64,000 nucleotides of DNA from Dicyema japonicum (Eukaryota; Animalia; Dicyemida), in contig RDEW01000063.1 in the NCBI GenBank assembly GCA_011109175.1, positions 1 through 64,000 of the forward strand, written 5' to 3'. The notes beneath the pieces were generated by a model. That model did not search any database. It was not told the DNA's origin and saw nothing but the letters and a program-made list of their open reading frames with translations. Below are positions 1,451 through 55,890 of the stretch, one piece after another. How positions within the stretch are numbered: the first letter of the stretch is position 1; every line of letters begins with the position of its first letter. Made by a program: the position numbers and the translations under genes.

Positions 1451-1544
1451 AATAAGCAAAATAATGGCACGCCAAGGAAATCGAATTGAGTCCTAGAATC
1501 CACGATATATAAGATGCGGAAATATCATTAAATAATATATATTA

Positions 1545-2549
1545 ATGTTATGCCGTTTTAATTTTATATTCACAATGATAGATTTAATGAAAAAACGTAT
1601 AGTAGCAGTCATTGCAGTACATATTTTTGAAGTTTTAGCTCAGGTGATTTCACTACTCATTATCCTGGTCTTCAAGATGTACTCTATAGATAATTTGATA
1701 AAGAAAAACACCGATATTGTGATAGTGGTAATCTCGGGTAACTTTAATTTATCTATTAGAACCTAAAAATCAAGCAAGAAGGCAGGTGATTAGAGACACG
1801 TGGGGTAATAAGAAAACAATGAAGGAATTTAATGCAACGTTAGTATTTTTCATGGGACGCTATAAAACTGGACGACCTTCTTATCTGGCTGAAGAATCAA
1901 AACTTCATGGAGATCTTATATTCGCAGACTTTTACGAATCTTACTTCAATTTGAGCATCAAAAGCATTGAGGCTCTCAAGTTGGTTTTTATTAATAAAAT
2001 AAGATGGGCTTTTATAACTTTCACGAATTTTAATTTTTTTGTTAAAGTCGATGACGACGTCCTCTTCAACATTGAAGAATTGACATTAAGGATTTCTCAG
2101 TTTGGAAACCGCATCAAACAAAATGGCCGTTTTTTGTTTGGGTTTTTGTTTAAGGATAGTAAGCCGATAAGGGACAATTCAAAATGGTAACTTCAAATTT
2201 AAATTCCAAGGGAAATTTCCTACGATGAGTATCCTTTAGATGATTATCCTCCATATTGTTCCGGCACGTGCTATGTTATGACAAGGGCAGCAGTAGATGC
2301 TATAGTTGAAGTTTGTAAAAATAAAAAATTAATACATTTGGAAGATGTCGCAATTACAGGTAAAAATTAAATAACTCTTAAGGAATTTGTGGAGAGGAAG
2401 TTCAAGTCATAAAATATAATGTCAAGGGATTTATTATCACTCAGAATTCTGAGAACATTTGCCTCACTAAAAACGCAGTCTCTCACCATCTTGATAAATC
2501 CCCTGATAAAATGAGAGAGTTTTACTATCAACAAAAAAACAATTGTTGA
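1545..2549 (+). CDS. Beta-1,3-galactosyltransferase (GT31 family), type II membrane protein, at least 4 exons
   Basis: Removing GT-AG introns 1738-1759 (22 nt), 2187-2210 (24 nt) and 2360-2382 (23 nt) gives one frame with RRQVIRDTWG, FVKVDDD, YPPYCSGTCYVM and LEDVAITGI; ends TGA at 2547-2549; start codon uncertain. Confidence 0.9.
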
Positions 2550-7810: not shown

Positions 7811-9740
7811 GGAAGTTAGCTAGCTAGAGTTTGAGCTTTCCAGGTATCTTTGTTTGATAAATTTTCCAAATAAGAATCCGCCTTGACACAGAGTCGAAAG
7901 CTTTGTGGACGTCTATAGAGCAAAGTACAGTCTTTATGTGTCCCGGTCTGTGAGAGAAACCATATCGTATAAAGTTAGTCAATGCAGATAAGTGGGTCAA
8001 AGTAGACCTCTCCTTTTTAAAACCATGTTGAAATGACAAATCCGGGAGGAAATATTTGATTTTCGCAAGAAGCAGCCTTTCCAGAATTTTCGACACCGAA
8101 CACAATAATGCGACCGGTCTGTATGAAGCTGGGTCCTTCTTCAATTTACCGGGTTTCAAAATTGGACGTAGGTGGGCCAGCTTCTATAATGCTGGAATAC
8201 AATTTTTGTTAATGGAGTGACTGAATATCTTTGTTAATTCAACGATTCCATACTCTCCCAGATTCTTTAAAAGATCATTGGGATTTTATCAGGTCCGTTA
8301 GAATATGTTGTTTTAATTGCTTTCAATGTATATCTCACGTCGTTTTTAGTGAAGTGAATCGTTTTCGGTTTTTTTCGGTTCACTGAGATATTTCGGGGGT
8401 ACATTTGACTTTTTATGATTTTTATGGAATATTTTCACATAGTATTTTATTAGGTTGTTTAAGTCCTTTTGGCTATGGTCCACATCGGACGATCTTTCAT
8501 CCCCTCTCGAGGCGTCTCGGATGGTCTTCCAAATTACAGTAGTGGGTCTATTTCTATTCAACGAGGAAAACACATGCTTCCATCTTGATATTTGTGCTCT
8601 TGCCTCCCTGTTTTATAATTCATTGTTCAAAGCCTTGAGTCTAGATTTATCGTCAGAAGTTAATCGGCCAGACTATTTGAGTTTGTTTTTTCCTTGGTTA
8701 ATGTCGACCTGCCATATCCCCTGGTGTATTTAGGTGGTGTTTAGGTACAGATAGTGATCTCGCGTCCAAGATAATGCTTTACATAAGCGACTACTTTGTC
8801 CATGGAAGTAATACCATCCAGGTGCTGCAGTAGATTGTCAGTGAGTGTACGGTAAAGTCTCCAATCTGCGCGTTGTAGTTAAATTATTTTAGGGATCTCA
8901 TCCTAGTTGACGTTTCTCTCTTGATCTCCAAAAGGATGGAATTATGGTCGCTTCTTGAGTTGTAAGTGACTGACCAAATCAATATTGCCGCCAGGTCGGG
9001 AAAACAAAACGTGATGTCTGGAGAAGTTAGTTTGTCTGACTCCTTACAAGGGGTTCTCGTATGTTTTGACGGGTCACTCATGACCGTGAAAGGCACTGTC
9101 TGCGAAAGTAGTACTTTTCCTCTTGATTCGGACGGTTGACTCGCCAGCCACATAGGGTGTATTGCGTTGACATCCCCGCCAATGATCACGTCGTTCAAAG
9201 AAGCCAAGGTAGATAAATTGGGCATATTGTAGTGCTTTGGGCAAGAACCAGGTGGGGATACATAGACGTTCAAAAGAATAATTTTTCCATTTGTTTCAAG
9301 TGAGACTGCATTGACTTCAGTAACATCGTCGTCTCCCAAGATATTCTCCACCACTGAAGTGATGTCCACACATTTAAGGTCTTTCCAATATAAAATGAGG
9401 AGGCCGCCACCCCGCTTCCTCTTTCGGTCAGTCCGTACTAACTCGTATCCAGGGTACATCGGGGTAAGACTGTTCGCAGGCAGTTTCGTCTCTTGTATTA
9501 AAGCCATGTCGATCTTCAGCTCAGCCAGGAGGGAGCACAGCTCCAACATCTTGCCTCTTACTCCATTGATATTTAGTTGAAGAACAGTGGTCCGTTTCGT
9601 GCGGTTGGCTAGGGGTTCTTTCCGGGTAGATGAGGATGATAGAGCATGCCGCCGGGGAGACAGTTTCCTCGGAGGTGGATGTCTAATGGTTCCTTTTAGA
9701 TGAGCATTAGGTGCTCTCTGGGCGTTACCAAATTTGACCT
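7811..9740 (-). mobile_element. Jockey/I-group LINE ORF2 remnant (APE plus partial RT)
   Basis: LQLNINGVRG, IQETKL, GGDVNA and SDH APE motifs (8884-9600); SYRPVALLCSVSKILE, QHGF and IDVHKAFDSV RT motifs (7824-8159). Confidence 0.85.
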
Positions 9741-10240: not shown

Positions 10241-11175
10241 TAAAGCGGCCTTGACTGACCATAATTACCAATGTAACCATAATGTCATGCGACATTTAAA
10301 CATTGCTCATAGATTACGCTTTAAGACTTTTAAGGCATCAAATCGGTAATTTGAAAACACAAAAAAGACTAGTTTGATACCTTTTCCACCCAATTCATCA
10401 AATACACGCAAAAATCAAAAGTTTTCTATCACTTCTATCATAAAATCAAAAGTTTTATAATGGAATGGTCCGAACATATGACTTTATTTTTGAAAAACGT
10501 GTGATGACGCTGACAGAGCTGCCACATGCTGAAGCCAGAGGCATTATCTCATCATAGAAATATTAGATCACAGATTTTTTCAATTATTTATCACAAATGC
10601 TACCTAACCTAAGGGAGCTATTGATTTTCACCACGTGGCAATATTACCAATATACCACATGCAATCATTTGTCTGTTAAGACTCTGAAGCAGAAGATGAC
10701 CTGAATAGGCACCTAGACTGATAATTTTAGAATTTTATGCTCATCGTGAACAAGCTCTGTTCATTTTGAGTATAATTTCCATCTCCAAGTGTAGGTTTCT
10801 CAAATCTTAATTTAGGTCGTCGGGATTCCAGTCAAATTGGTTTACCTTGTATTCTTATGTTCATAGTCTTTGATGCTATCCGAGTAGTCTTCTAGGACTG
10901 ATCTCCTCTAGGTTTGGTTGATTTCTAAGAATTTAGGTTTCCAGTTGTAATAGGTTTCATTTTTATTCGGAGATTGGTTCAATAAGAAAGTACTTAATTT
11001 CACTAACAATAGCTGATAGGCCGATGAAAAACTTGGATAAGCCTTTCTTGATGAAAACGAGAGATTTTCAAGTTCACTAACTTTTTAATAACAGCCAGAG
11101 AGAAGTAATGTTATTAGTAACCGAAATCAACAACAAAGATTAGAAGTGGATGATTAAAGACCCAATCTGAAATTA

Positions 11176-13244
11176 TTATAATTTTGTTAAATGAAGCATT
11201 ATTCTCTTTTGTTTAATATTCTTATGCAGAAAATAGATCACAAGAATAATGACGATGATCGCTGGAATCAGTAAATAAATAAATTTATCTATTTGATATT
11301 AAATTTACTAGAAAAGGTAGTTTTTTCGTTTGCACCAAATTTTTCAAAATTCTCGGAGGAAAAAACTGTGTTTTTTGAATTGAAATCGTTGTTCCCTGGC
11401 GCTAAAAATAATTCATAAATAAACATTCCATTGAAATTTCTAAACAAAAATATACTTTAAACCAGTATTTAGAAAATATTTTTATATAAAAAAAATAACA
11501 TGAAATTAAACCTGCTATAGAAGTTGTAAGAGTTGTTATAACCATTGTAGTTGGAGTTGCAGTGAGGACTGGGAATCATGCATGACTATACCTGCTGGAA
11601 ACATAATATTATCAACTAATGGGTATCACAAAACATTATACATTTCTTGGATTCATTTGCAGTATCTAAAATAAATTACTAGTCATTATACCTGATGTTG
11701 TTGTATGAGTTGAATCTAGTAAAAATATCATCCATTATACCTGTCGTTAATAGATTCGTTGAAGCTAGCGTAAATTACAAGTCATGATACCTGCTGTTGA
11801 TGAATTAGTAGAAGCTAGTAAAATGACCATTCATCATACCTGCTGTCGACGGAGTAGTAGATGCTAGCGGAAATGACCAGTCATAATACCTGCTGTTGAT
11901 GAATCAGTAGAATCTAGTAAAATCACCATTCATCATACCTGATGTCGACGAAATAGTAACAGCTAGCGGAAATGACCATTCATCATACCTTGTGTCGACG
12001 GAGTAGTAGAAGCTAGCGGAAATGACCAATCATAATACCTGCTGTTGATGAATCAGTAGAATCTAGTAAAATCACCATTCATCATACCTGCTGTCGACGG
12101 AATAGTTATAGCTAGCGGAAATGACCATTCATCATACCTGCTGTCGACGGAGTAGTAGATGCTAGCAGAAATGACCAGTCATAATACCTGCTAATGATGA
12201 ATCAGTAGAATCTAGTAAAATCACAATTCATCATACCTGCTGTCGACGGAATAGTTATAGCTAGCGGAAATGACCATTCATCATACCTGCTGTCGACGGA
12301 GTAGTAGATGCTAGCAGAAATGACCAGTCATAATACCTGCTAATGATGAATCAGTAGAATCTAGTAAAATCACCATTCATCATACCTGATGTCGACGGAA
12401 TAGTAAAAGCTAGCGGAAATGACCATTCATCATACTTTGTGTCGACGGAATAGTAGAAGCTAGTAAAATGACCATTCATCATACCTGCTGTCGACGGAGT
12501 AGTAGAAGCTAGTAAAATGACTATTCACCATACCTGCTGTCGACGGAGTAGTAGAAGCTAGCGGAAATGACAATTCATCATACCTGCTGTCGACGGAATA
12601 GTAAAAGCTAGCGGAAATGACCAGTCATTATACCTGCAAATGATGAATCAATAGAATCTAGTAAAATCATCATTCATCATACCTGCTGTCGACGGGATAG
12701 TAGAAGCTAGTAAAATGACAATTCATCATACCTGCTGTCGACGGAATAGTAAAAGCTAGCGGAAATGACCAGTCATTATACCTGCAAATGATGAATCAAT
12801 AGAATCTAGTAAAATCATCATTCATCATACCTGCTGTCGACGGAGTAGTAGAAGCTAGTAAAATGACCATTCATCATACCTGCTGTCGACGGAGTAGTAG
12901 AAGCTAGTAAAATGACTATTCATCATACCTGCTGTCGACGGAGTAGTAGAAGCTAGCGGAAATAACCATTCATCATACCTGCTGTCGACGGAGTAGTAGA
13001 AGCTAGTAAAATGAGCATTCATCATACCTTTGGTTAATGGAATGGTAGAAGCTATCAGAAATTATCATTATATACCTTTCGTAGTCAAAGCTGTAGTACG
13101 TTTGACTTTTTTTAAATTCTAATTATAACTTTAATTGCTTATACTTTGATTGTACCTACTACACGATACTGAGGAGCTATTAATCAAAATATAAAAATTA
13201 CCTGATTTAATAGTGAAAAATAATACGACAATCTCAACTATCAT
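11176..13244 (-). CDS. Type I membrane mucin-like protein, about 37 exons, about 370 aa
   Basis: All-canonical GT-AG splicing gives MIVEIVVLFFTIKSA (signal-like), PQYRVVGTIKNLKKVKR, 30 octapeptides of the ASTTPSTA/DSTDSSTA type, then a TM helix FIYLLIPAIIVIILVIYFL and basic tail HKNIKQKR; no stops in any exon. Confidence 0.85.
11570..13080 (-). repeat. 49-50 bp tandem array; each unit is a 24-nt exon plus a micro-intron
   Basis: 31 donor sites at about 49-50 bp spacing; consensus unit CTTCTACTACTCCGTCGACAGCAG|GTATGATGAATGGTCATTTTACTAG. Confidence 0.95.
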
Positions 13245-13890
13245 CTAATTTAGACGTTAGTCTTCATTATAAATATGTCTATAAGAATTCGACCTTATTT
13301 AATCCGAACACATTCTTTTTAAAAGTGCATTCGGATGTTATATCAGTTATTTTTTAAACTGTATTCGGCAGATGTATATTATCCCGATGGATGGAATAGT
13401 TATACTTTTGTATGGGAGGCATTGGGTGTCTTCTGAGTAAGGTATCCAATGATCTGAAGAAGGAAGAGAAATTTTCAACCAATTGACCATATAGCACCAC
13501 ATAGCGCCTCACGGACGTATGCATATGAAACTTCCAAAGTTCTAGATTGTATCTGAGGTTATAAAATATTAATGAGGACCATAAAGACCGTGATGATCCG
13601 AAGTAGTGTAGAAACTATCAGGATTATCCAAGCTCGGTATTTATTCTTAGACTTCGGCACATCAAAACACACCAAATTTTATTTCCATGACAACGACTAT
13701 GGAATCGACTGAGGCGTTTCAGTTCAACTGATGCATTGGTCAAAAATCTCACGTCTCAAACTTAAAAGTATTCATATTTCCCCCAGAATGCCAAATCTAA
13801 TCTCACTTTCTCCAGAGACTCCGAGAACGTTCTAGCCGTCTATTTCCCTTGTTTTCGAAAGGTAATATATTTAAATAGCTATGGCCTTCA

Positions 13891-16800
13891 CTTTTGGTTG
13901 AGGTGGTGACGTCCCTCTATAGCACACATGTCTAATACGCATTTGAATAATCCTTTCTGGTTTTCTACCCTTACCTTCAATGCCAGGGGCCTTAATGACT
14001 GGTCGAAGAGGCACCAACTATGTCTGGACCTTGCAAAATATGGATGCTCTGTTTGCTGTCTCCAAGAAACGAAGCTCAGAAAAGGACTCGATGAAAACCT
14101 TGGAGACTACAGACTAATCCTCTTTCCATCGTACTGTAAACACTATGGACAGGGTTTCGCTGTTCACAAGAATTTTCTCCCCAGATTACATCGATATTGG
14201 AAAATTGATGACAGGATATGTGTTATTCAATTTCTTATTGGACCCAAAGGGAAGTCCAGGCAACTAATTTCCATTGTGAACGTGTACGCCCCACATAGTG
14301 GCCGTGTTGCCAAAAACCCAGAGGAATTGGACGTTTTCTACGAAGAACTTGTCGAGGTCGTATCTTCTCTGAAGTTTTCATCGTTCCTCTTTATCGCTGG
14401 TGATTGGAATGCTAAAGCTGGGGTACATCAAGGACACGAACGTTTTATTGGACCACATGGAAGGGGGATCAGGAACTATTCTGGTACTGCTCTGGCATAT
14501 TTCTGCGAATCCTTTGATTTATTCCTGTGCAATACTCAATTCCAACATTCCGCACGCCACAAGACAACGTGGATGGGCACTAGACTATCGACCACCGGAA
14601 ATCTGATAAGGATTTATAATCAGATCGATTATATTCTGTGTCGAGAAAAGACAAATCTCTCTTACGGGACTCGAGATCTTATGGAGGACTAACTGTTAAC
14701 AGTGATCACAAAAGTGTGTCAGCAAGATTCAGCTTAAGACTTGGTCCAACTGCGGAGGAGTTCCTCTACGGGATAACTAATAGAAGATGCTTCTTCCAAA
14801 CACATCGTGGTGGAGATTCCACGCGATCAAGAAGGTATATGACTGAACTCTTGGGCTCTTCACCAAAAGTACAAGCAGACTATAAAGAATGTGTATAAAT
14901 CGGCAATCTTTCACCAGGAAAGGCATGGCTCGAAACTAGGAGAGGGATCATTTCCGCTGCCGACAAACATCTGGGGGAACTTAAACCCCATAGCGGTCAG
15001 CGTCACCCGGAAGTGTCAGCCCTATTGAATTTGCAAAAGAACTTAAGGCTTAGATCCGAAAATACTGTCGATCCTCAGACTGTTTGCAAACTGAAACAAG
15101 AACGAAGGCAAATTGAGAGAAAAATCAAACTCCTAAACAGACTACATCACACTAGTCAGTTGGAAAGCAAGATCAGAGAGGTAGAAAACCTTAAAGACAA
15201 TGCTGCGACATTCATGGCTATACGACTAATACGGAGGAAGAGCCAATCAGTGAAACTTATTTTGCATGACAGTAATGGAAAAACAATAGGAAATGTTGCA
15301 GAACAGACAGAGTTCATAGCATCACATATTGAACAACTGTTCTTTGTAAAAGGAGAAAAATCAGATTTCACGCCTAAGAACACAACACTTGAACGGATCA
15401 TTTCACCAAGGAGGTTTGCATGGCGATAAGGAAACTTAAATCTGGGCGCTCTCCAGGACCAGATAATATACCATCTGAATTGCTAAAGTTTGGCCCTCCA
15501 GAACTTGCAGATAAACTCTCAAAATTGCTGAATGACATGATAGAAAACAAGGACTTTTCAGAAATTGGAAAGGGGATACTAGTACCAGTTCAAAAAGGTA
15601 ATAAACCCCCTGGGCCAGTTGAAAACCTGCGCCCTGTCATCCTTCTAAACACCTTAAGGAAGATCCTTGCCCTAATTACTCTTAATCGGATCCAAGAGCC
15701 GGTGGACGGGTACTTGGCCCAGAGCCAGAGTGGTTTTAGGACAGGGAGATCAACGGCTGATGTAGTATGGTGCCATAGATGGCAATGTGCTATTCAACAA
15801 AGATTCCGGAGCTCAAAGACTATCCTTGGAATTGATCTGACCAGAGCTTTCGACACTGTCCGTCGGGGAAAACTCATTGAAGTGCTTGAAAGTTTCCTGG
15901 ATAAGGACTCGGTTATTCTGATACGGATACTCTTATCAAACACGAGGTTACGAGTGCGTATTGGAAAATGTTTGTCACGGGAAATTATTTCAACAGTGGG
16001 CACACCCCAAGGAGATTCCCTTTCCCCAGTATTGTTTGCTATATACCTTGAATCGGCTCTGCAAGACCTCCGGAAGTATTACAACAATGATATTATGGAG
16101 ATCGTGTATGCCGATGATGTTGACTTTATCTCGACTGACAAAGAAGCACTCTTACGTCTCTTGGAGGTTGCATCAGGCTGTTTGGCCAAATGGTGTCTAT
16201 CACTGAATGTTCAGAAAACGGATATTGTTGAAATTAAGCGGATGGAACTACGCAATAGTGAATGTTGGAGGAAGACCGTAAAGCTTGGCTCTCTTCTCGG
16301 AGACTCCGAAGACATTGCAAGAAGAAAATTGTTATCTACGGTTACTATGCAAAAACTTATGAAATGTTGGATAAGAAAATGCTCGGTCGGGCCATCACTC
16401 CGACTCAGGTTGTATGAGGCGTTCGTGAGGTCCATACTAACATACAACTCTGGGACGTGGGGAATTTCGAAAACGGACGAACAAAACCTTGACTCCTTTT
16501 ACAGAAGGCAACTTCGGTCTCTCTTGGGACTAAAGTGGCCAATGCGTGTAGGGAGTGAAAATTTATATAGAAGATGCGGTTCCGGACCTCTGAGCACCAT
16601 GATCATGAAGGCTCGCTGGAGATTGTTTGGCCATATTCTCAGATTGGAACAAGACACGCCAGCAAACGTCGTCATGGAAGAATACTTCGATACGTCAGGG
16701 GAGAAGTTCAGAGGTCGTCCAAGAATAACTCTTCCGGAAGTCCTTAATGGTGACCTGAGATCAGTAACCAGACACTAAAGGACGGTGAAGACCTTAGTAG

Positions 16801-20446: not shown

Positions 20447-21902
20447 CCTCCGACTGAATTCATCGCATGGTAAATAGAGCCTTTCTTTATTCGCAGCTCG
20501 GAAATGGATTATCCCTTAGTATTTGTCTGATCATGCTATCAACGTCCATCGTACTCACACGACTATAACCTATCAACCCCACGTAATAATTAACCAATGA
20601 AATTACAAATTTGGTACCCCTTGTGATAGGCGAACAGAACGGAACATTTGAGTCCCGTATCACAATTTTTTAATTTTTTTAATAGCCTCGACAGTAGCAT
20701 TCTATATTATTTTTGGTGGGTTTTCCATGTCCATGTGAGCAATCGTNGAACATTTGAGTCCCGTATCACAATTTTTCAATTTTTTAATAGCCTCGACAGT
20801 AGCATTCTATATTATTTTTGGTGGGTTTTCCATGTCCATGTGAGCAATCGTCTTCTTAAACTCCAAACGATTGTTCTCACGAGCTTCGTGACACATGATT
20901 CTCCACTCATAACGATCCGCAATTAATTTATTCCTTCCAGCACTATTCCATAAAAAATTTTTCATATTAAGTGTGCAACCAAGAGCTCATGATCACTATA
21001 TGAGGAGATCCCTCCATAACTGGGTCGTTCATAATGGACAGATTTTAACAGTTTCTTCAAGGATCTTTTTCAGAGTACGTAATCTACCTGGTTATAAATT
21101 CGGACGTAATCTCCAATTTCGTTTTTTAGTCAGGTCCGTGTAGTTTTATGCCTTTCAGGATGTGTGAAAGCCGAATTACAATTAATCATATAAATTGTGA
21201 CTCTCCAGATATATTTCTGACCAGAGACAGTGTCATGACATGTATAGTGAGTCTAATTCGTCTGGGTTTTTAGAGACTTTTCCCACAGTACATATTGATA
21301 ATATAAATAAGGGATCCATTACCCTTCCCGTCTTTATCTGCTATCCTGTCATTAACCTCTTCATATTCTGTAGATTCTCACATCAAGATATTTGTGGACA
21401 GCAGAACCAATCCCGAAGACTAAATTCTCCATAGTTCTCATGGTCCAGCCTTTAATTTAGTTAGTTAAGTTATTATTAAGTAAACACTGCTAATTAAGTT
21501 ATGGGGGAAAGTAATACGAAACGGCTGGCTTGCCAACCGGTTTCTACTCAGATAACCTACACAAGAAATCAATAAAGCACAGGGTAATCCTCTTTTATTC
21601 CCTGGATACTACATATGGTGATCTTGCACGCTGCTAGTTCTCTGCTCAGTCTTCCCTTTTCCACCTCCCTTTAATCCTCGAACATTGAATGACGCCAGTG
21701 TGAAGAGTTTACTCAAATCATGTCAACAATAACTGCTAGTTTGAATATATTAATTTTTAAACAAAATCCTGTAAATTTTAAAGGAATAAAGACAGAATGA
21801 AAATTTTAATCCTAAAAATCAATCAAGTTACCACAGAAATTTGGTTATCAAATTAGTATCGATAATATTATATGAAAATCAATGATTTATAGATTAGTAG
21901 AG

Positions 21903-22977
21903 TTAGAAGATCACATTTGTGATAATGCCCTCACCATAGATGAAGTGTTGCCATGTTCGTTATTATAATTATTTCTTCGCATTCTCCGCATGTCCATTCT
22001 ATCCCTTACCTTTATGATATCTTCAGGAAAGTTTAAATTTATGATTGGTTCACAGTCCTCAAATGTTTGTTTGGAGAACTCGCATTCTTCGATGCTAACG
22101 AATAAATAAAACCATTATCAAATGATGACTTGGGAGCAGGTGACTCATATTCAGGTCTCTCAATTGGTTCTATAAAATTATCAAAAAAGAAACTAAAATT
22201 TTTATAATATTGGATTTCTTCAACATTGCTTGAAATTGTGACTCCGTTGCTCATAAAATAGTCGTAGGATTCCTGATCAACAACCAAAAGAGAAATATCT
22301 CCAGTAGATTCTCTGACCAAATCAACCACATTTTCGTGTTCCAAATTCTCAACATTAATATCGTTGACTTCAATAAGAATGTCGTCATTCTTTATTCCGG
22401 CCATATCCGCAAGGGAGTTATCAATAACATTTGTAAGTATGTGCTGATTATTCAATTCGTTTCTCTGGAGAGTAAATCCATATGATTCACTTTCGTTTAA
22501 TGTTATGTGACAGAGACGAGCAACTGGGCCATTTGTAGTTTCTTTTGATGCTCTCGGTGTTGAATCCGTAATTGGCATTTCATTTTGTTCTGTTACGTCA
22601 ATTTCTTGATGTAAATTATCTGAGGGTGATTGGAAGGCATTATCCTCACATTCGATTTCAGGGTTTTGAAGGTCTTCGATGTTGAATTTTACAGTTGGAA
22701 TTTCCTTTAAAGTCGGCTTCTCATTTCTAAGAACTTTCATTTGTATTTTTTTCTTGGATTTTTTAATTTTTTTAACGGCTTTATTAAAATTTATGGTAGT
22801 GAAATCACAACTGTCGACTGAGAGCACAATATCTCCTTCCATAAGTCCTGATTCTTCTGCAGGACTTTCTGGGATAATGCTGGAAATGTAAAATCTCTTA
22901 TCCTGTTTATCATCTTGAGTAAAATAAAATCCATAGCCGCTCTTTGAATGCCCGATATTTAGTAATACTTCACTCAT
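21903..22977 (-). CDS. NHERF/EBP50-like two-PDZ scaffold protein
   Basis: Two PDZ domains (SGYGFYF, ARLCHI..SYGFTL, LIEVNDINVE..HENVV); a 35-nt GT-AG intron links to EPIINLNF..KVRDRMDMRR..W, resembling the NHERF ERM-binding tail; likely 24-nt in-frame intron near 22190. Confidence 0.85.
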
Positions 22978-30379: not shown

Positions 30380-31452
30380 AAAGAAATTCGAAGGTAGCCA
30401 TCCTAGCCCTCAAACCTAAAAGAGCTACCTCCTCGATTGTCCTCTCTGTGGAGAACGTGCAGAAAATGGTTAAGGGTCAAAAGTCGACTTATTCCTGCGG
30501 TCCGGACGGAATCCCTACAATAGTTCTGAAAAATAGGCCCTGTGCTACATGGCCCTCACCAAAATTTCAACTTTTCAATCAACGAAAATTGTGAAAATTG
30601 TATTCTTTCCATATGGAAGCTATCAAACATACGACCTATTCTGAAACCCGGCGACCAAAGGGATCACCAGCCTCATTCAGACCAATATCTCTCCTATGTT
30701 TTACATCAAAACTTTTGGAAAAGCTGATTCTTGAACTAATCAAATCATACCTTCCTGATGCACCTTTTTAACACGGATAGAAAAGGGCACTCCACAGAAA
30801 CACATCTTACATGCCTTACAAATTTCATCAAGGATGGCCTAAAACGCAAACCTCATCAGAAGTCTTTGTTATGCTCCATCGATATAGAAAAAGCTTTAGA
30901 CACTGTTCCAAGAAAGGTTTTGATAAGGAAGATCTTTACATCAAAAATCCCAAACTACCTGAAAATCTGGATTGCTAATTTCCTAAATGGAAGAAGAGGA
31001 AGAGTAACAAATAGAAAAACTATGTCAGTGACCAATTTCCATCTAAATGGGGTCTCTCAAGGATCTCCACTGTCACCACACCTGTTCAACCTAGTCTTAA
31101 ATGATATGCCCTCCCTTACCGGTGACGATACTCTGGTTCTGACATATACGGATGATATAATCGTCGCAGTCAAAGACCAGTGCGTTCATACTGCTGTATA
31201 CCGGCTACAAGGTTCATTGGACGATCTGAACTGGGTCTCGTCAAGAACATTATACATACAAGTCCCGAAAAGTTTTATACAACAATTTTCACAACAGAGG
31301 ATTGACAAACTCCGCTCCATGTGTAACCATAAATGGAAACTCAATCCCCACGACCAACTCGGTCAAGATACTGGGCGTAACATACGACCCACTTTTGACC
31401 TTTAGCGAACACATCGACAACGTCATTTTCTCGGCACATCGAAAGCTAAATT
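30380..31452 (+). mobile_element. Jockey/I-group LINE RT fragment
   Basis: SCGPDG, IDIEKALDTV, GVSQGSPLSP, YTDD and KILGVTYD motifs with frameshifts. Confidence 0.85.
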
Positions 31453-33602: not shown

Positions 33603-34864
33603 TTAGGTTATAAATTTATTTGGCAGACCAAGTTGGCATTCTTGTTCAATGTCATCAGGGATCACGTCGAATAGAAGTTCTTCAAATCTATCTAAGTCAC
33701 ACATTTTTGCGCAGCCAAAAAAAGTCATGAAAGAATACCTGGAATTTCAAGTACACTAATGTTTGAGCTGTTTAATCTGTAGAGAATTCTTACGTACCAC
33801 GTGTTATTAATTTCGTGGAGTTCAAAGAAAATAGAAGCAGCAAACTCCGGGAAAGTGCCATTGAAGACTCCCATTGTTCCTAGTAGTGACATTATCGTCG
33901 AATCATGCTACAATAAAACTTATTACAAACTCCAGAGTAAATCATTGCTTTTTCATAAATTCCTGGCTTTTTGAGTCTCTTATTTTTCATTGAATTAATT
34001 ATCTCTTTTAAGAGAGGTCCTTTAATCTGAGAAAATATAACCTCCACGTAGACGATTCATTTGTTTGTCATTTCTGTAAATCATGTGCTTTAAGGAAGAC
34101 AAATCTTTCATTGTTTCGAAAATCGAATCGTTCAGCCAATATGGCATTGCAAGACCCTCAGCTTTCTTAAAATTATGTTAAAGCTTACATCACATAAAAT
34201 ATTACTAAAAATTTTAGGAATTTGATCAAAAGGCTTGTAAGAGAATCCTGCTAATTTTGAAATCCTTGATATGAATTCCTGAATAGTCATTTTTATTTTA
34301 CTCTGTTTTCGTTGTCAATTTTCTTAATAAGTGGATCATGCTTTCTAGCCAGCAAATCATAAGCAGGACAAGGATATTTCATTCGGATAATCTCTATATT
34401 TTGCAAAATCTACTTTATCTTCATTTTTGGGAATTGTGGAAACTGGAATTGGCCTCCAAGAGATATTATGATTCCAAATTTGATCTCCCGATGGGGGATA
34501 AAGCCCAGCCAAGTTAGCTAAGGCACTCATAATAGTTCTCTCCTTGTCAGAGGAAATTATCTTAACATCTGACAGATTGTAGGGAATCAAAAATGGATAT
34601 GTCTTCCTAATATATTGTCCTAGTTCGTATTGCATAGATAGTCCATTCTAATAAACTCAATTATCACAAAATACGTTAGTTAGTTGCCCAAAACCTTGTT
34701 TCCAATGATCAAAGTGCTTGTTTGAAGGAAAAAGATCAATTGGACTTCGAGCTCCATGTCTATAAATCTACATATAGTTATAGTCTGCCTACAATATTGA
34801 GATATCTCAGAGTCCTGGGATTTCGACATTTCACAAGATAGATAGAAATAATGAGAAAAATCAT
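33603..34864 (-). CDS. Secreted/lysosomal histidine acid phosphatase (ACP2/ACPP-like)
   Basis: Signal-like MIFLIISIYLV; RHGARSP; GQLT; RTIMSA.ANLAGLYP; YSGHDST; IPGCAKMC; nine 22-27 nt introns, one ending TG. Confidence 0.92.
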
Positions 34865-36813: not shown

Positions 36814-41667
<4,854 letters not shown>

Positions 41668-43400: not shown

Positions 43401-43571
43401 CGTAGAATTATAAATTTGTATAGCTAATAATACTGATACAGTTGAATAATTAATACTATGGTCATTTCTCGTAGTGTTGATTTCTGGTCTTTAAAAAGTT
43501 GTAAAAATAGTAATTAATATTTATTAATAAAAATAACCAAGATTATGTAAGCGTTAACAAAAAACAAAAAA

Positions 43572-44510
43572 TTATGTGAATTTAGAGATTTCATCATTCC
43601 TTGTAATCATAGCTTTTACGCATTTATCAATTAAATCATTGAATCCCCCTTCATCCAATACATTTAACCCAGCTTCCGTGGTCCCCTTTGGTACTTTGAT
43701 AGACTGAATCAGTTTTTGTGTATCATAGTTATTTTCCATTAATAATTTGGCTGCATTCAACATTGTAGATGTGCAGGCATTGACAGCTACATGATCAGGG
43801 TACCCTTCAGTAGTCACGGCACGTTTTAATGCGTCGACTAAGTAAATAAACTTTATATAACAGAAAATAATTACGACACAGATGGAAGAACCAGAGGAAG
43901 CGATTACATTCCCAATCAGATGTTCATCTACCACTTGAACTGTTCCTACAGCTTCGAAAATCCACTAAATTAGAGATTTCGACTATACTTTAGAAACTTG
44001 TAATCCCCAAGAAGACACATGGTCTTTGTTGTAAGAAAAACCTGTAAACGAAGAACACATATAAGCGGCGACAGAAGGCATAGTTCTGAATACATTCAAA
44101 GGTTTTCTAGCATCGTCAGTTTTAAGGACCAAAATAAACAATTAAAAAACATATTCCATTGACTCAATTGTTATTCCAGCAGCAGTAGATATGATTATTG
44201 TAGAGGAGGGTATACTTTTTAACATTGAGATTATATCCGAGGGACGGACACAGAGGATTATAACATTACAGCTGTTTTTTATTTCTTCATTTGTGGCATA
44301 ACTAATTCCAAGATTCTTTAAATATTAATTGTGGGCATTACTGTGGCTTTATAACTTGTCTTAGGAGATGAAGTGGAAGCCTTAAGTTGGTTTGGATGCA
44401 GAATTCCTTGAATATTTAATAGTTTTACCGCTTTTTAATATTCCTTTAATAATTGACTGCGCTATTTCTCCACAGCCAATAAAACCAACTGTGACATCTT
44501 GGAATTGCAT
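43572..44510 (-). CDS. PYCR: Pyrroline-5-carboxylate reductase
   Basis: VGFIGCGEIA, STAAGITI, VFRTMP, ASSGSS and PKGTTEAGL; five 21-26 nt introns, one ending TG. Confidence 0.9.
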
Positions 44511-44619
44511 TCTAATTTTTTTAAATAAATATTTATTTAAGTTGATTATAATTAATTTTCTAATTTGTATTCCTACTAGAAGATTCCCAAACAAATGCTT
44601 AGAAAGGAGATTTTGATTG

Positions 44620-46050
44620 GAATTGATGCATCAATCAAGAAATATATTTATTCCTTGCCTAGATTGGATATTAACGATATCACTGATATCATATATGCTT
44701 GGCAGTGCACGCATAGGCCTCTTACCAAGAAGAATGTCTATGAAAGACAAACTCACTAAACTTAGCAAACAACTTGAGCAAATTCGGGAAGAAGCAATTT
44801 GACAAAGAAATACGTAATACTGTAAACCGAAAATTCCCAAATCACGACAGATCTTTGGTTTGTTAATGGACTCTCTTAGTCAAATTTCCGAAAGTAATGA
44901 TGGCAACTCCGGAAATGGAGAACCAACGTATACGACTAATCACCTATTTATGGACGATATAAAGTTGTTTTCTCGCCATAGTCACTCAATGGAAATGATG
45001 TTGGAGGAAGTTGAATCGTTTTTTGATGCAGCCGGGTTGGAGAGAAACTTTGACAAATCTGCAACAAACTTCCTTGTCCGAGAAAGCTCGTTTCCTCGAT
45101 GGATTGGATGGACAACGATATCTGGGAGTTATTGAAGATAAGAACAGTAATGTTCTTAAAGGAGAAATTATGGATAAAATCTATGAAGAAACATCTACGC
45201 AGATCAAAAATTTGACAGACGGAATTCAACTCAGTATGTAGTCTCTCTATAACTATTATATTGGATCGGTACCCCTTATCCATGAAATCCATCCAAATAC
45301 ATATCTACTTAATTAAGCATCTTGATTCGAATATCCTCATTTACCGGCCTGACAAGTTTGTTCTCTTCCTCTGTCAGGCCTTCATACAATTTCTTCCCGA
45401 AGGCTAGTTTTATTGCCGCTCGCCGGGTTTTCTCTAGTCGGACGAGAATCCTTTCTCTCGAGGGGGTGTAGAACTATCCCTCGCTTCCGTAAATAAGTCT
45501 AGGAAGAATCACATTCCGAAAGACAAATAGCATGGAATCAACGTCCAACTTTTGTCTTTTAGTACAGAACAGTGCTTGCAAAGCCTTCTTCCTTCGCCCT
45601 TCGATGTCCCTCAGGTATGACTCTCCCATCGACTGAAATCCCCAGGTATTTCATAGATGAAACTCTCGATATACGAAGAGTGTAGGGCTCTTCCTGATGC
45701 CTACCCGACCTGTTTATCCTCAAGTAACTGGATTTTTCCGTGGAGAGTTTCATGTCTCTCCGATCGCACCAACCCTGGACTAATGACAGCCTATGAAGAG
45801 CGGAAATACTACGGGTCATTAATTCAAAGAAAACACACAGAATTCATTTCCCGAAAGTACAACATTGAAAATGTGAAGGACTTGTCTAAATTGATGGAAA
45901 AACAGTATGAATATCTCTGGAAAAATTGAGAAGAAACCGCAGCAATCTATTTATTTCAGTGTTTGAAAGACACAGAAGTGAATACAACACTCCCTGTAAT
46001 CGATCGTAACATGTCTCCGATAACGGAGAAATTAAGTACGGAAATCGTAT
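44620..46050. mobile_element. R4/NeSL-type RT C-terminal fragments (+, about 44620-45330 and 45760-46050) interrupted by a CR1/L2/Jockey-like piece (-, about 45330-45760)
   Basis: HLFMDDIKLF, GLERNFDKSA and RYLGVIE on plus strand; SMKYLGISVD on minus strand. Confidence 0.7.
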
Positions 46051-55039: not shown

Positions 55040-55890
55040 AATTATGATTCGACTAAACTTTTGGATACTGTATCAAATAACGGGATTAAAATTAGAGGCA
55101 GGAACATCAATAATTTGCGCTATGCTGACGATACAACCTTACTGGCTGAAACAGAGGATGGCCTCAGGGGGTTGATTCTAAGATTAAGAGAAGAGAGCGC
55201 CGTCTTTGGTTTATTGCTAAATATCAAGAAGACCAAAATTATGACTACTGCTAATAATGGAATAATGGAAATAAAAATTGGGAATGAGAAATTAGAGAGT
55301 TGCGATAATGTTGTCTTTCTGGGATGTCTAATTAATCGGAATGGTGACGGAGGCTTGGAAATCAAAAGGCGAATTACCATGGAACGAGACACCTTCCAGA
55401 GAATGAATAGAATTTGGAAAAACGAAAATATTTGCTTAAGGACCAAATGCAGACTAGTTAATGCAATCGTGTTCCCGGTTTTTCTACACGGCGCAGAATC
55501 ATGGATACTGAAAAAGGCGGATATACGAAAAATTGATGCTTTTGAGCTGTGGTGCTGGAGGAGGTTACTAAGAATCCCTTGGACTTCCAAAATAACAAAC
55601 ATCGATGTACTCAAACGGGTAAAGACTGACATTTCGCTAGAAGGAAGAATCGTAAAACACACATTGGCGTTCTTTGGGCATGTTGTCCGCTCTGATTCAC
55701 TGGAAAAAACCATTATGCTGAGCAATATTACTGAGAAGAGAAGACCTGGCCGACTGAGGACTCGGTGGCTATCCACGTGGAAGACGTCACGAGAATGCCT
55801 ATATCAAGGCTACTTAAAATTGCAACGGATCGGGGAGGAAACTCGTTCATGAGATCTCCAAGGGTCGGACACGACTTAATTGGACAACAT
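55040..55890 (+). mobile_element. BovB/RTE-1-type LINE 3' part (RT C-terminus and 3' end)
   Basis: INNLRYADDTTLLAE, GLLLNIKKTKIM and IDAFELWCWRRLLRIPWT; 3' motif GTCGGACACGACT. Confidence 0.9.

Follow-up and report, generated by a model that had tools for sequence, protein, structure and literature searches.

The micro-exon genes (MEGs) of schistosomes are encoded for the most part by very short exons with a length divisible by three (3n), which are placed between longer end exons; their products are small secreted or surface proteins of the parasite, and omission of any internal exon leaves the frame intact (PMC10526429; PMC4350168). The 'bicycle' effector genes of aphids, which are parasite-like animals, likewise contain many micro-exons, encode fast-evolving secreted proteins and form a family that is identified from its gene structure and not from its sequence (10.1101/2021.09.24.461719). 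Tiny AT-rich introns of 22-27 nt that begin with GTA and end with AG are shared by Dicyema, myxobolid myxozoans and Paramecium (PMC2222250; PMC13644364). In Dicyema they have a mean length of 26.2 +/- 1.9 nt (PMC2222250) and the splice signals are reduced to 'GTa' and 'AG'; the GC content of the myxozoan Henneguya is 29% (PMC13644364). Here we describe a locus on the minus strand of 64,000 nt of DNA from Dicyema japonicum (GenBank assembly GCA_011109175.1, contig RDEW01000063.1, positions 1 to 64,000; hereafter the window), where an array of 24-nt exons alternating with introns of this size is probably part of a real, so far unannotated gene for a mucin-like protein. Proteins that expand by duplication of an exon-containing module are known, examples being fibrillar collagen with its 54-bp exons, titin PEVK, spider Flag silk and Chironomus Balbiani-ring 3.

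Positions 11673-13077 form a single tandem repeats finder (TRF) array with a period of 49 nt, 28.4 copies and 77% matches. Higher-order periods of 99 and 149 nt were also found, the latter corresponding to three units (8.4 copies, 90%). On the minus strand, each unit of the array divides into a 24-nt exon and a segment that runs from GTA to TAG over 25 or 26 nt. All 30 exons at 13051-11592 are exactly 24 nt long, those of the diverged end units included, and each begins in phase 1. The 33 short introns of the locus (one of 23 nt, one of 24 nt, 15 of 25 nt and 16 of 26 nt) all read GTA..(T/C)AG and correspond in length, 5′ GTA and 3′ AG to the tiny introns of dicyemids; their GC content is 30%, that of the exons 41%. 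Once spliced, the array contains no stop in the proposed frame, and six and ten stops in the other two frames. The 24-nt exons comprise 18 distinct sequences and encode octapeptides such as ASTTPSTA (nine times), DSTDSSTA/DSTDSSLA and AITIPSTA. A preliminary description of the locus had claimed that the array has no long open reading frame (ORF) and that every minus-strand unit splits into a 24-nt phase-1 exon and a GT..AG micro-intron, and both statements were borne out exactly, no unspliced frame being open beyond 64 codons and the parse holding for 30 of 30 exons. It had also called all 30 exons stop-free and rich in Ser and Thr; the first is correct, but the last two (DTANESKK and FDNIMFPA) are not Ser/Thr-rich.

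Two other ways of reading the array were considered and set aside. A plus-strand gene and an unspliced ORF were rejected, as no unspliced frame stays open for more than 64 codons on either strand. A ciliate nuclear code would not yield a read-through ORF, judged by eye, as the period of 49 nt shifts the frame and the introns carry TGA, and the animal-type PDZ/NHERF proteins and LINEs in the window also speak against it.

Chaining of exons from the ATG at 13244, with two longer introns added at the 3′ end, resulted in a model of 36 exons and 35 introns that encodes 357 aa (model A; Table 1). Both end points given in the preliminary description are exact, 13244 marking the ATG and 11176 the final base of the stop codon, and the model was reproduced in full. 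The 30 exons of 24 nt are preceded by exons of 32-43 nt and followed by three with 57, 93 and 86 coding nt. Removal of all 35 introns would convert the 2.07-kb locus into an ORF of 1.07 kb for a mucin-like protein, in which Ser/Thr/Ala/Pro repeats of about 240 residues would lie between a short N-terminus of hydrophobic character and a hydrophobic anchor at the C-terminus. In the central domain of this protein each Ser/Thr-rich repeat of eight residues would thus correspond to one phase-1 exon of 24 nt followed by a GTA..TAG intron of 25-26 nt. The predicted composition is 42% Ser+Thr, with 22 Pro (6%), 49 Ala (14%) and no Cys.

Table 1. Positions of the parts of the proposed gene, listed from its 5′ to its 3′ end.
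Feature	Positions	Strand	Remarks
Proposed gene, coding span (model A)	11176-13244	-	
Alternative first exon (candidate)	13256-13267	-	ATG AAG ACT AAC; via 23-nt GTC..GAG intron 13255-13233
Exon 1	13202-13244	-	43 nt; encodes MIVEIVVLFFTIKS; in-frame TAG before ATG
Unique 5′ part	13052-13201	-	introns 1-3, exons 2-3
Intron 1	13201-13177	-	25 nt, GTA..TAG
Exon 2	13176-13145	-	
Intron 2	13144-13119	-	26 nt, GTA..TAG
Exon 3	13118-13076	-	bears KKVKR site
Intron 3	13075-13052	-	24 nt, GTA..TAG
Array	11592-13051	-	30 phase-1 exons of 24 nt
Higher-order repeat	11782-13029	-	149 nt, three exon+intron units (ASTTPSTA / AITIPSTA / DSTDSSTA)
Intron 33	11569-11591	-	23 nt, GTA..CAG, unique sequence
Exon 34	11512-11568	-	57 nt, Thr-rich, partly hydrophobic (VLTATPTTMVITTLTTSIA)
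Intron 34 (model A)	11402-11511	-	110 nt, very AT-rich, GTT..TAG; sole donor without GTA
Exon 35	11309-11401	-	93 nt, unique hydrophilic spacer
Intron 35	11262-11308	-	47 nt, GTA..CAG
Last exon, coding part	11176-11261	-	(T)IIVIILVIYFL run, basic tail HKNIKQK(R/G)IMLHLTKL, stop
Candidate 3′ UTR	11064-11175	-	ATTAAA at 11089-11084

Beyond the exact reproduction of the model, signs of constraint were observed on its splice sites and on the length of its exons. Changes were counted by parsimony on a neighbour-joining tree that comprised 29 units, namely exons 4-32 together with the intron after each of them. The exon columns have accumulated 2.25 changes per column and the inner intron columns 2.1, and the six GTA/TAG columns have accumulated none. 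Units u4 and u29-u32, the five that have diverged most, deviate from the consensus at 34% of the other positions and retain 30 of 30 splice-site letters, for which the probability under equal divergence is about 5e-6 (3e-4 when GT and AG alone are considered). Variation in length is confined to the introns (23-26 nt), and 30 of 30 exons remain at 24 nt. Outside the array, the 193-nt 5′ part contains three unique GTA..TAG segments of 24-26 nt, where 0.22 would be expected from the window background of 1.16 GTA..TAG segments per kb per strand (P = 0.0016), and these three introns link the ATG exon to the array in frame. Furthermore, whichever of the 35 introns is retained, translation would stop prematurely: the 26-nt introns have a TAG of their own, the 25-nt introns shift the frame into a stop within 11-76 codons, and the sole short intron of 3n length (24 nt) contains a TAA. 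The tiny introns of Paramecium are alike in this respect, as Jaillon et al. reportedly found in 2008 that their retention always results in a premature stop. The preliminary description had proposed that a retained intron would give a truncated form without an anchor; the premature stop applies to all 35 introns, but a secreted form does not follow from it, as such transcripts may simply be degraded.

Introns of this size are real in the window, since a known protein domain continues across one of them. A Galactosyl_T domain (PF01762) is interrupted by a 24-nt GTA..AG intron at 2187-2210, with the exon at 1762-2184 matching profile positions 1-128 (E = 9e-23) and the exon at 2212-2358 matching positions 134-180 (E = 7e-11). 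A partial confirmation comes from a second domain, P5CR_dimer, the match to which begins at profile position 18 directly after a 24-nt candidate intron at 43874-43851. A peak in the length of GTA..TAG segments was not seen in the window outside the gene, where this test has low power as the window is poor in genes. In the published D. japonicum genome introns average 38 bp, LINEs are numerous and repeats make up 48.9%, at 36.7% GC (PMC6736024); the window agrees with it in its LINE load and in its GC content of 36.4%.

Further candidate introns were noted in the genes to which these domains belong and in two others. The beta-1,3-galactosyltransferase-like gene at 1536-2546 (plus strand) has candidate introns of 22, 24 and 23 nt at 1738-1759, 2187-2210 and 2360-2382. 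A histidine acid phosphatase gene at 34025-34767 (minus strand) carries the RHGxRxP motif, forms a single open frame via candidate introns of 27, 22, 23 and 23 nt, and has one exon matching the His_Phos_2 profile. In a SNF2-family helicase gene at about 37255-40013 (minus strand), several GTA..AG candidate introns of 23-26 nt were seen and the exon at 39616-39750 corresponds to positions 212-255 of SNF2-rel_dom; some of the exons obtained by naive intron cuts have stops in all frames, and further introns are probably present. The pyrroline-5-carboxylate reductase gene with the P5CR_dimer match lies at 43451-44741 (minus strand) and has further candidate introns in the range of 23-26 nt.

Adjacent three-unit blocks of 149 nt are up to 99.3% identical, in exons and introns alike, and since this identity spans both, exons and introns were duplicated together. 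This agrees with the growth by joint exon and intron duplication that had been claimed for the locus, and the number of introns has risen with it. The array would have grown by unequal exchange of blocks of one and three units, by which exons and introns multiply together. The mechanism is that of known module duplication, and the new element is its tiny scale. In other repeat proteins built from exon+intron modules, the number of introns also rises with the number of repeats, and the iterated introns of Flag silk are homogenised with the exons as they are in the array; in contrast, the introns in these proteins have hundreds to thousands of bases and their arrays are not minisatellite-like. 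To our knowledge, one intron per 49 nt in a unit of 49-50 nt has so far not been described. The array also departs from the previously known tiny introns, which interrupt ordinary exons (with a mean of 198 nt in D. japonicum, PMC6736024), whereas those of the array are only 24 nt apart and are copies of each other.

The comparison with MEGs is one of architecture, the MEG proteins being beyond the reach of the peptide searches. The locus shares with them symmetric micro-exons (3n, at most 81 nt) between longer end exons. It does not share the long introns, as its micro-exons are separated by 23-26 nt and those of MEGs by introns of up to 5 kb, and the exons of MEGs are not tandem copies, whereas here they belong to a satellite-like unit of 49-50 nt. 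Exon skipping is documented in MEGs. For the present locus, the preliminary description had argued that any subset of the symmetric exons could be skipped in frame. The arithmetic is correct for the internal 24-nt exons, and dropping one exon with both of its introns would create an intron of 74-76 nt, which is within the range of the gene itself; that skipping occurs and varies the surface coat is a hypothesis. The 'bicycle' genes differ in that they lack tandem arrays and tiny introns and encode proteins rich in cysteine instead of Ser and Thr. Dicyemids are spiralians for which an affinity to flatworms has been proposed (PMC6736024).

By composition and layout, the predicted product resembles a small membrane-bound mucin. 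Mucin-like membrane glycoproteins of parasites and animals also have a repeat ectodomain rich in Ser, Thr, Pro and Ala; it is preceded by a hydrophobic N-terminus and followed by an anchor and a basic tail, to which the putative ends of model A would correspond. Unlike here, the repeat domain of mucins is normally encoded in one large exon. The predicted protein does not resemble gel-forming or SEA-type mucins: it has about 130 non-repeat residues and no Cys in model A, and no SEA, VWD, C8 or cysteine-knot domain was seen, as judged from size and composition. We infer that the gene is transcribed and spliced and that its product would be secreted or anchored, O-glycosylated and part of a surface coat; a place in the glycocalyx of the surface cells of the parasite is a reasonable guess and no more.

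Several points weigh against a functional gene of this kind. To obtain a baseline, random 49-mers from the window were treated as perfect tandem units; an open 3n exon plus a GT..AG segment of 22-28 nt could be fitted to 53% of them, and the strict GTA..TAG version to 4.2%. A periodic AG|GT parse on its own is therefore weak evidence. Substitutions per column at codon positions 1, 2 and 3 amount to 2.4, 2.5 and 1.9, and thus the codon-position test gave no signature of purifying selection on the repeat peptide; non-coding DNA would look alike. Mucin repeats commonly evolve without visible purifying selection on the peptide. As most units are young copies, their intactness proves little. The designation as a mucin is drawn from the composition of the putative protein. 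Among the claims for the flanking exons, the KKVKR site is present in the assembly, but the signal-like N-terminus is weak, since MIVEIVVLFFTIKS has a hydrophobic run of 8-11 residues and a Glu at position 4, and the transmembrane helix with the basic tail needs two atypical introns. The anchor of model A, TTFSTIIVIILVIYFL followed by the basic tail, is reached only through the 110-nt intron with a GTT donor and the 47-nt intron. An unrestricted search for GT..AG introns at the 3′ end returned 96,261 paths that keep a frame open, and modelling of this type consequently proves nothing. The 3′ part of the gene model is under-determined.

Searches of sequencing runs and of protein sequences belong to the same side of the balance. 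The index of runs was queried with 31-mers of the genomic stretch, by which only the longer end exons could be reached: a spliced transcript made up of 24-nt exons has no 31-mer in common with the genome and hence could not be found in it. Six runs gave matches (X1 to X6). X1-X4 contain 63-84% of the words of this stretch, and as intergenic words are included these runs represent DNA; the runs with this DNA date from 2019 and 2017 and carry one species label, in keeping with the dicyemid papers. No splice joint was seen in the reads of the locus, the matching runs being the DNA-like X1-X4 together with X5 and X6. X5 (2015, labelled with another organism) yielded one contig of 183 nt at 11064-11246 with a depth of 2.1 and no more in 2.7 kb. 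This contig starts 15 nt inside the last coding exon, ends 20 nt past the ATTAAA and carries no junction; it would fit a 3′-biased RNA library, which is suggestive but no proof. In X6 only a piece of 36 nt at 13276-13311 was present, and the contigs of X1 and X6 continue from there into unrelated sequence; the piece probably belongs to a dispersed repeat just upstream of the gene. Finally, two predicted peptides, one C-terminal of 72 aa and one of 56 aa from the middle of the array, found no match in a set of 5.8 billion proteins. These blanks say little, since the product of a two-PDZ ORF in the window has no copy in this set either.

The main rival explanation, which we regard as unlikely, takes the locus for a minisatellite that does not code for protein, or for a dead relic: an exon+intron piece of a former gene would have been amplified and would still look intact because most of the copies are young. 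It would account for the codon positions without a selection signal, for the very recent origin of the adjacent 99.3% identical blocks and for the DNA-like matches without a transcript in the runs found; the position between LINE copies in a gene-poor stretch and a chance parse rate of 4-53% for perfect repeats also point in this direction. However, it does not explain why the old, diverged units at the ends of the array retain their splice letters, the exon length of 24 nt and the frame, nor why unique flanking exons and introns contain start and stop codons together with a hydrophobic anchor, and zero stops over about 357 codons would be unexpected for a relic in AT-rich DNA. We favour a real gene.

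A real gene with other ends is a possibility to which we give a rather low weight. Exon 34 could be read through without splicing to a stop ending at 11402 (model B), resulting in a protein of 334 aa with a 21-residue hydrophobic segment as anchor (MVITTLTTSIAGLISCYFFYI), and/or translation could start at the ATG at 13267; in the former case 11064-11401 would be 3′ UTR or a separate unit. Such a read-through would dispense with the donor at 11511, the only one of 35 that lacks GTA, and with an intron of 110 nt where the 33 upstream introns have 23-26 nt, and the 21-residue segment has a mean hydropathy of about 1.6 with a Lys next to it. On the other hand, the 110-nt piece is AT-rich and intron-like, its translation KIFSKYWFKVYFCLEISMECLFMNYF resembles a translated spacer, and model A terminates in a clean hydrophobic run with a basic tail. 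The last exon of model A is moreover the only part that was present in X5, with the contig ending 20 nt past the ATTAAA. Both candidate anchors are marginal, with a hydropathy of about 1.5-1.6 across 19-21 residues (calculated by hand). At the other end, a start at 13267 would lead to MKTN-IVVLFFTIKS, which is more canonical as a signal peptide than the N-terminus of model A but depends on the weaker GTC..GAG splice sites. We favour model A over model B because the 110-nt piece is very AT-rich and intron-like, and the X5 contig weakly supports this choice.

That the array, or the number and order of its units, is an artefact of repeat assembly appears very improbable. Some unit adjacencies in X1/X2 contigs are absent from the window, e.g. 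from 11896 to 11994 and from 11896 to 12984, and the read depth is uneven, with about 900 at 11100-11835 versus about 1590 at 13004-13380. Nevertheless, the units and both flanks occur at 99-100% identity in the contigs of X1 and X2, which derive from one sample that is possibly the assembled one, and the uncertainty is limited to copy number and order and leaves the architecture unaffected. The unit count of 30 and the order of the units may thus differ between haplotypes or from the assembly. X1 and X2 also differ from the assembly at full depth at 11205, 13108 and 13171. By the frame of the model all three differences are non-synonymous: the first replaces an Arg of the tail by Gly, the second turns KKVKR into KRVKR, and the third replaces Gln by Glu. 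None creates a stop. Two further observations concern the haplotypes. At 10971-11097, two alleles with seven differing sites were found in X1/X2, each at about half depth, and at 11100-11835 a single form was found at about half the depth of 13004-13380; the second haplotype may have diverged strongly here or may be without this part.

A cluster of small non-coding RNA genes of C/D-box snoRNA type, which might be proposed from the AUGAUGA in each 'intron' and the CUGA in some 'exons', is hardly credible and was rejected, as the best Rfam matches, two sub-threshold hits to snR75 at 11856-11944 and 12303-12391 (23 bits versus a gathering threshold of 40, E = 0.06), lie on the plus strand, stem from one and the same repeat and were taken as chance, while the minus strand has no match to any Rfam family and the 3n exon length, the open frame and the flanking exons would be left unexplained.

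Among the other features of the window is an apparently intronless ORF of 312 aa at 22039-22977 (minus strand), which is NHERF-like with two PDZ domains and shows 26-37% identity to vertebrate NHERFs; this is the ORF mentioned above. ORFs for LINE-type endonuclease/reverse transcriptase are located at 13928-16778 (plus), 8884-9549 (minus), 30758-31405 (plus) and 55061-55852 (plus), and the mucin locus lies between two of the LINE copies, both of which have their 5′ ends facing it. A direct duplication of 105 bp (2.0 copies, 98% identical) is present at 20642-20851. A paralogue of the unique exons of the proposed gene was not found within the 64-kb window.

The published annotation of the D. 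japonicum genome masked repeats before transcripts were mapped (PMC6736024), which could explain why genes of this kind have stayed hidden. In its most far-reaching form, which we consider doubtful, our reading would imply that all 35 introns are spliced and that this is the most densely interrupted animal gene known, with one intron per 49 nt and exons below the footprint of the spliceosome; it would then belong to a hidden, so far unannotated family of satellite-like micro-exon genes in which unequal exchange, and perhaps exon skipping, vary the length of a mucin coat. If the locus is indeed a gene, it would stand for a class that is invisible to repeat masking and standard aligners and is not among the 5,012 genes published for this reduced parasite genome. 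A role at the boundary between host and parasite within the cephalopod kidney is plausible, if unproven. The gene would also be an extreme natural test case for splicing, as the 5′ and 3′ sites of neighbouring introns are 24 nt apart, which bears on intron definition. The exon-junction mark sits about 24 nt upstream of a junction, and exons of 24 nt would therefore bear on how this mark could be placed at all. Finally, the array would offer a simple route by which the number of introns grows with a repeat, and unequal exchange between its units would alter the protein in steps of eight residues.

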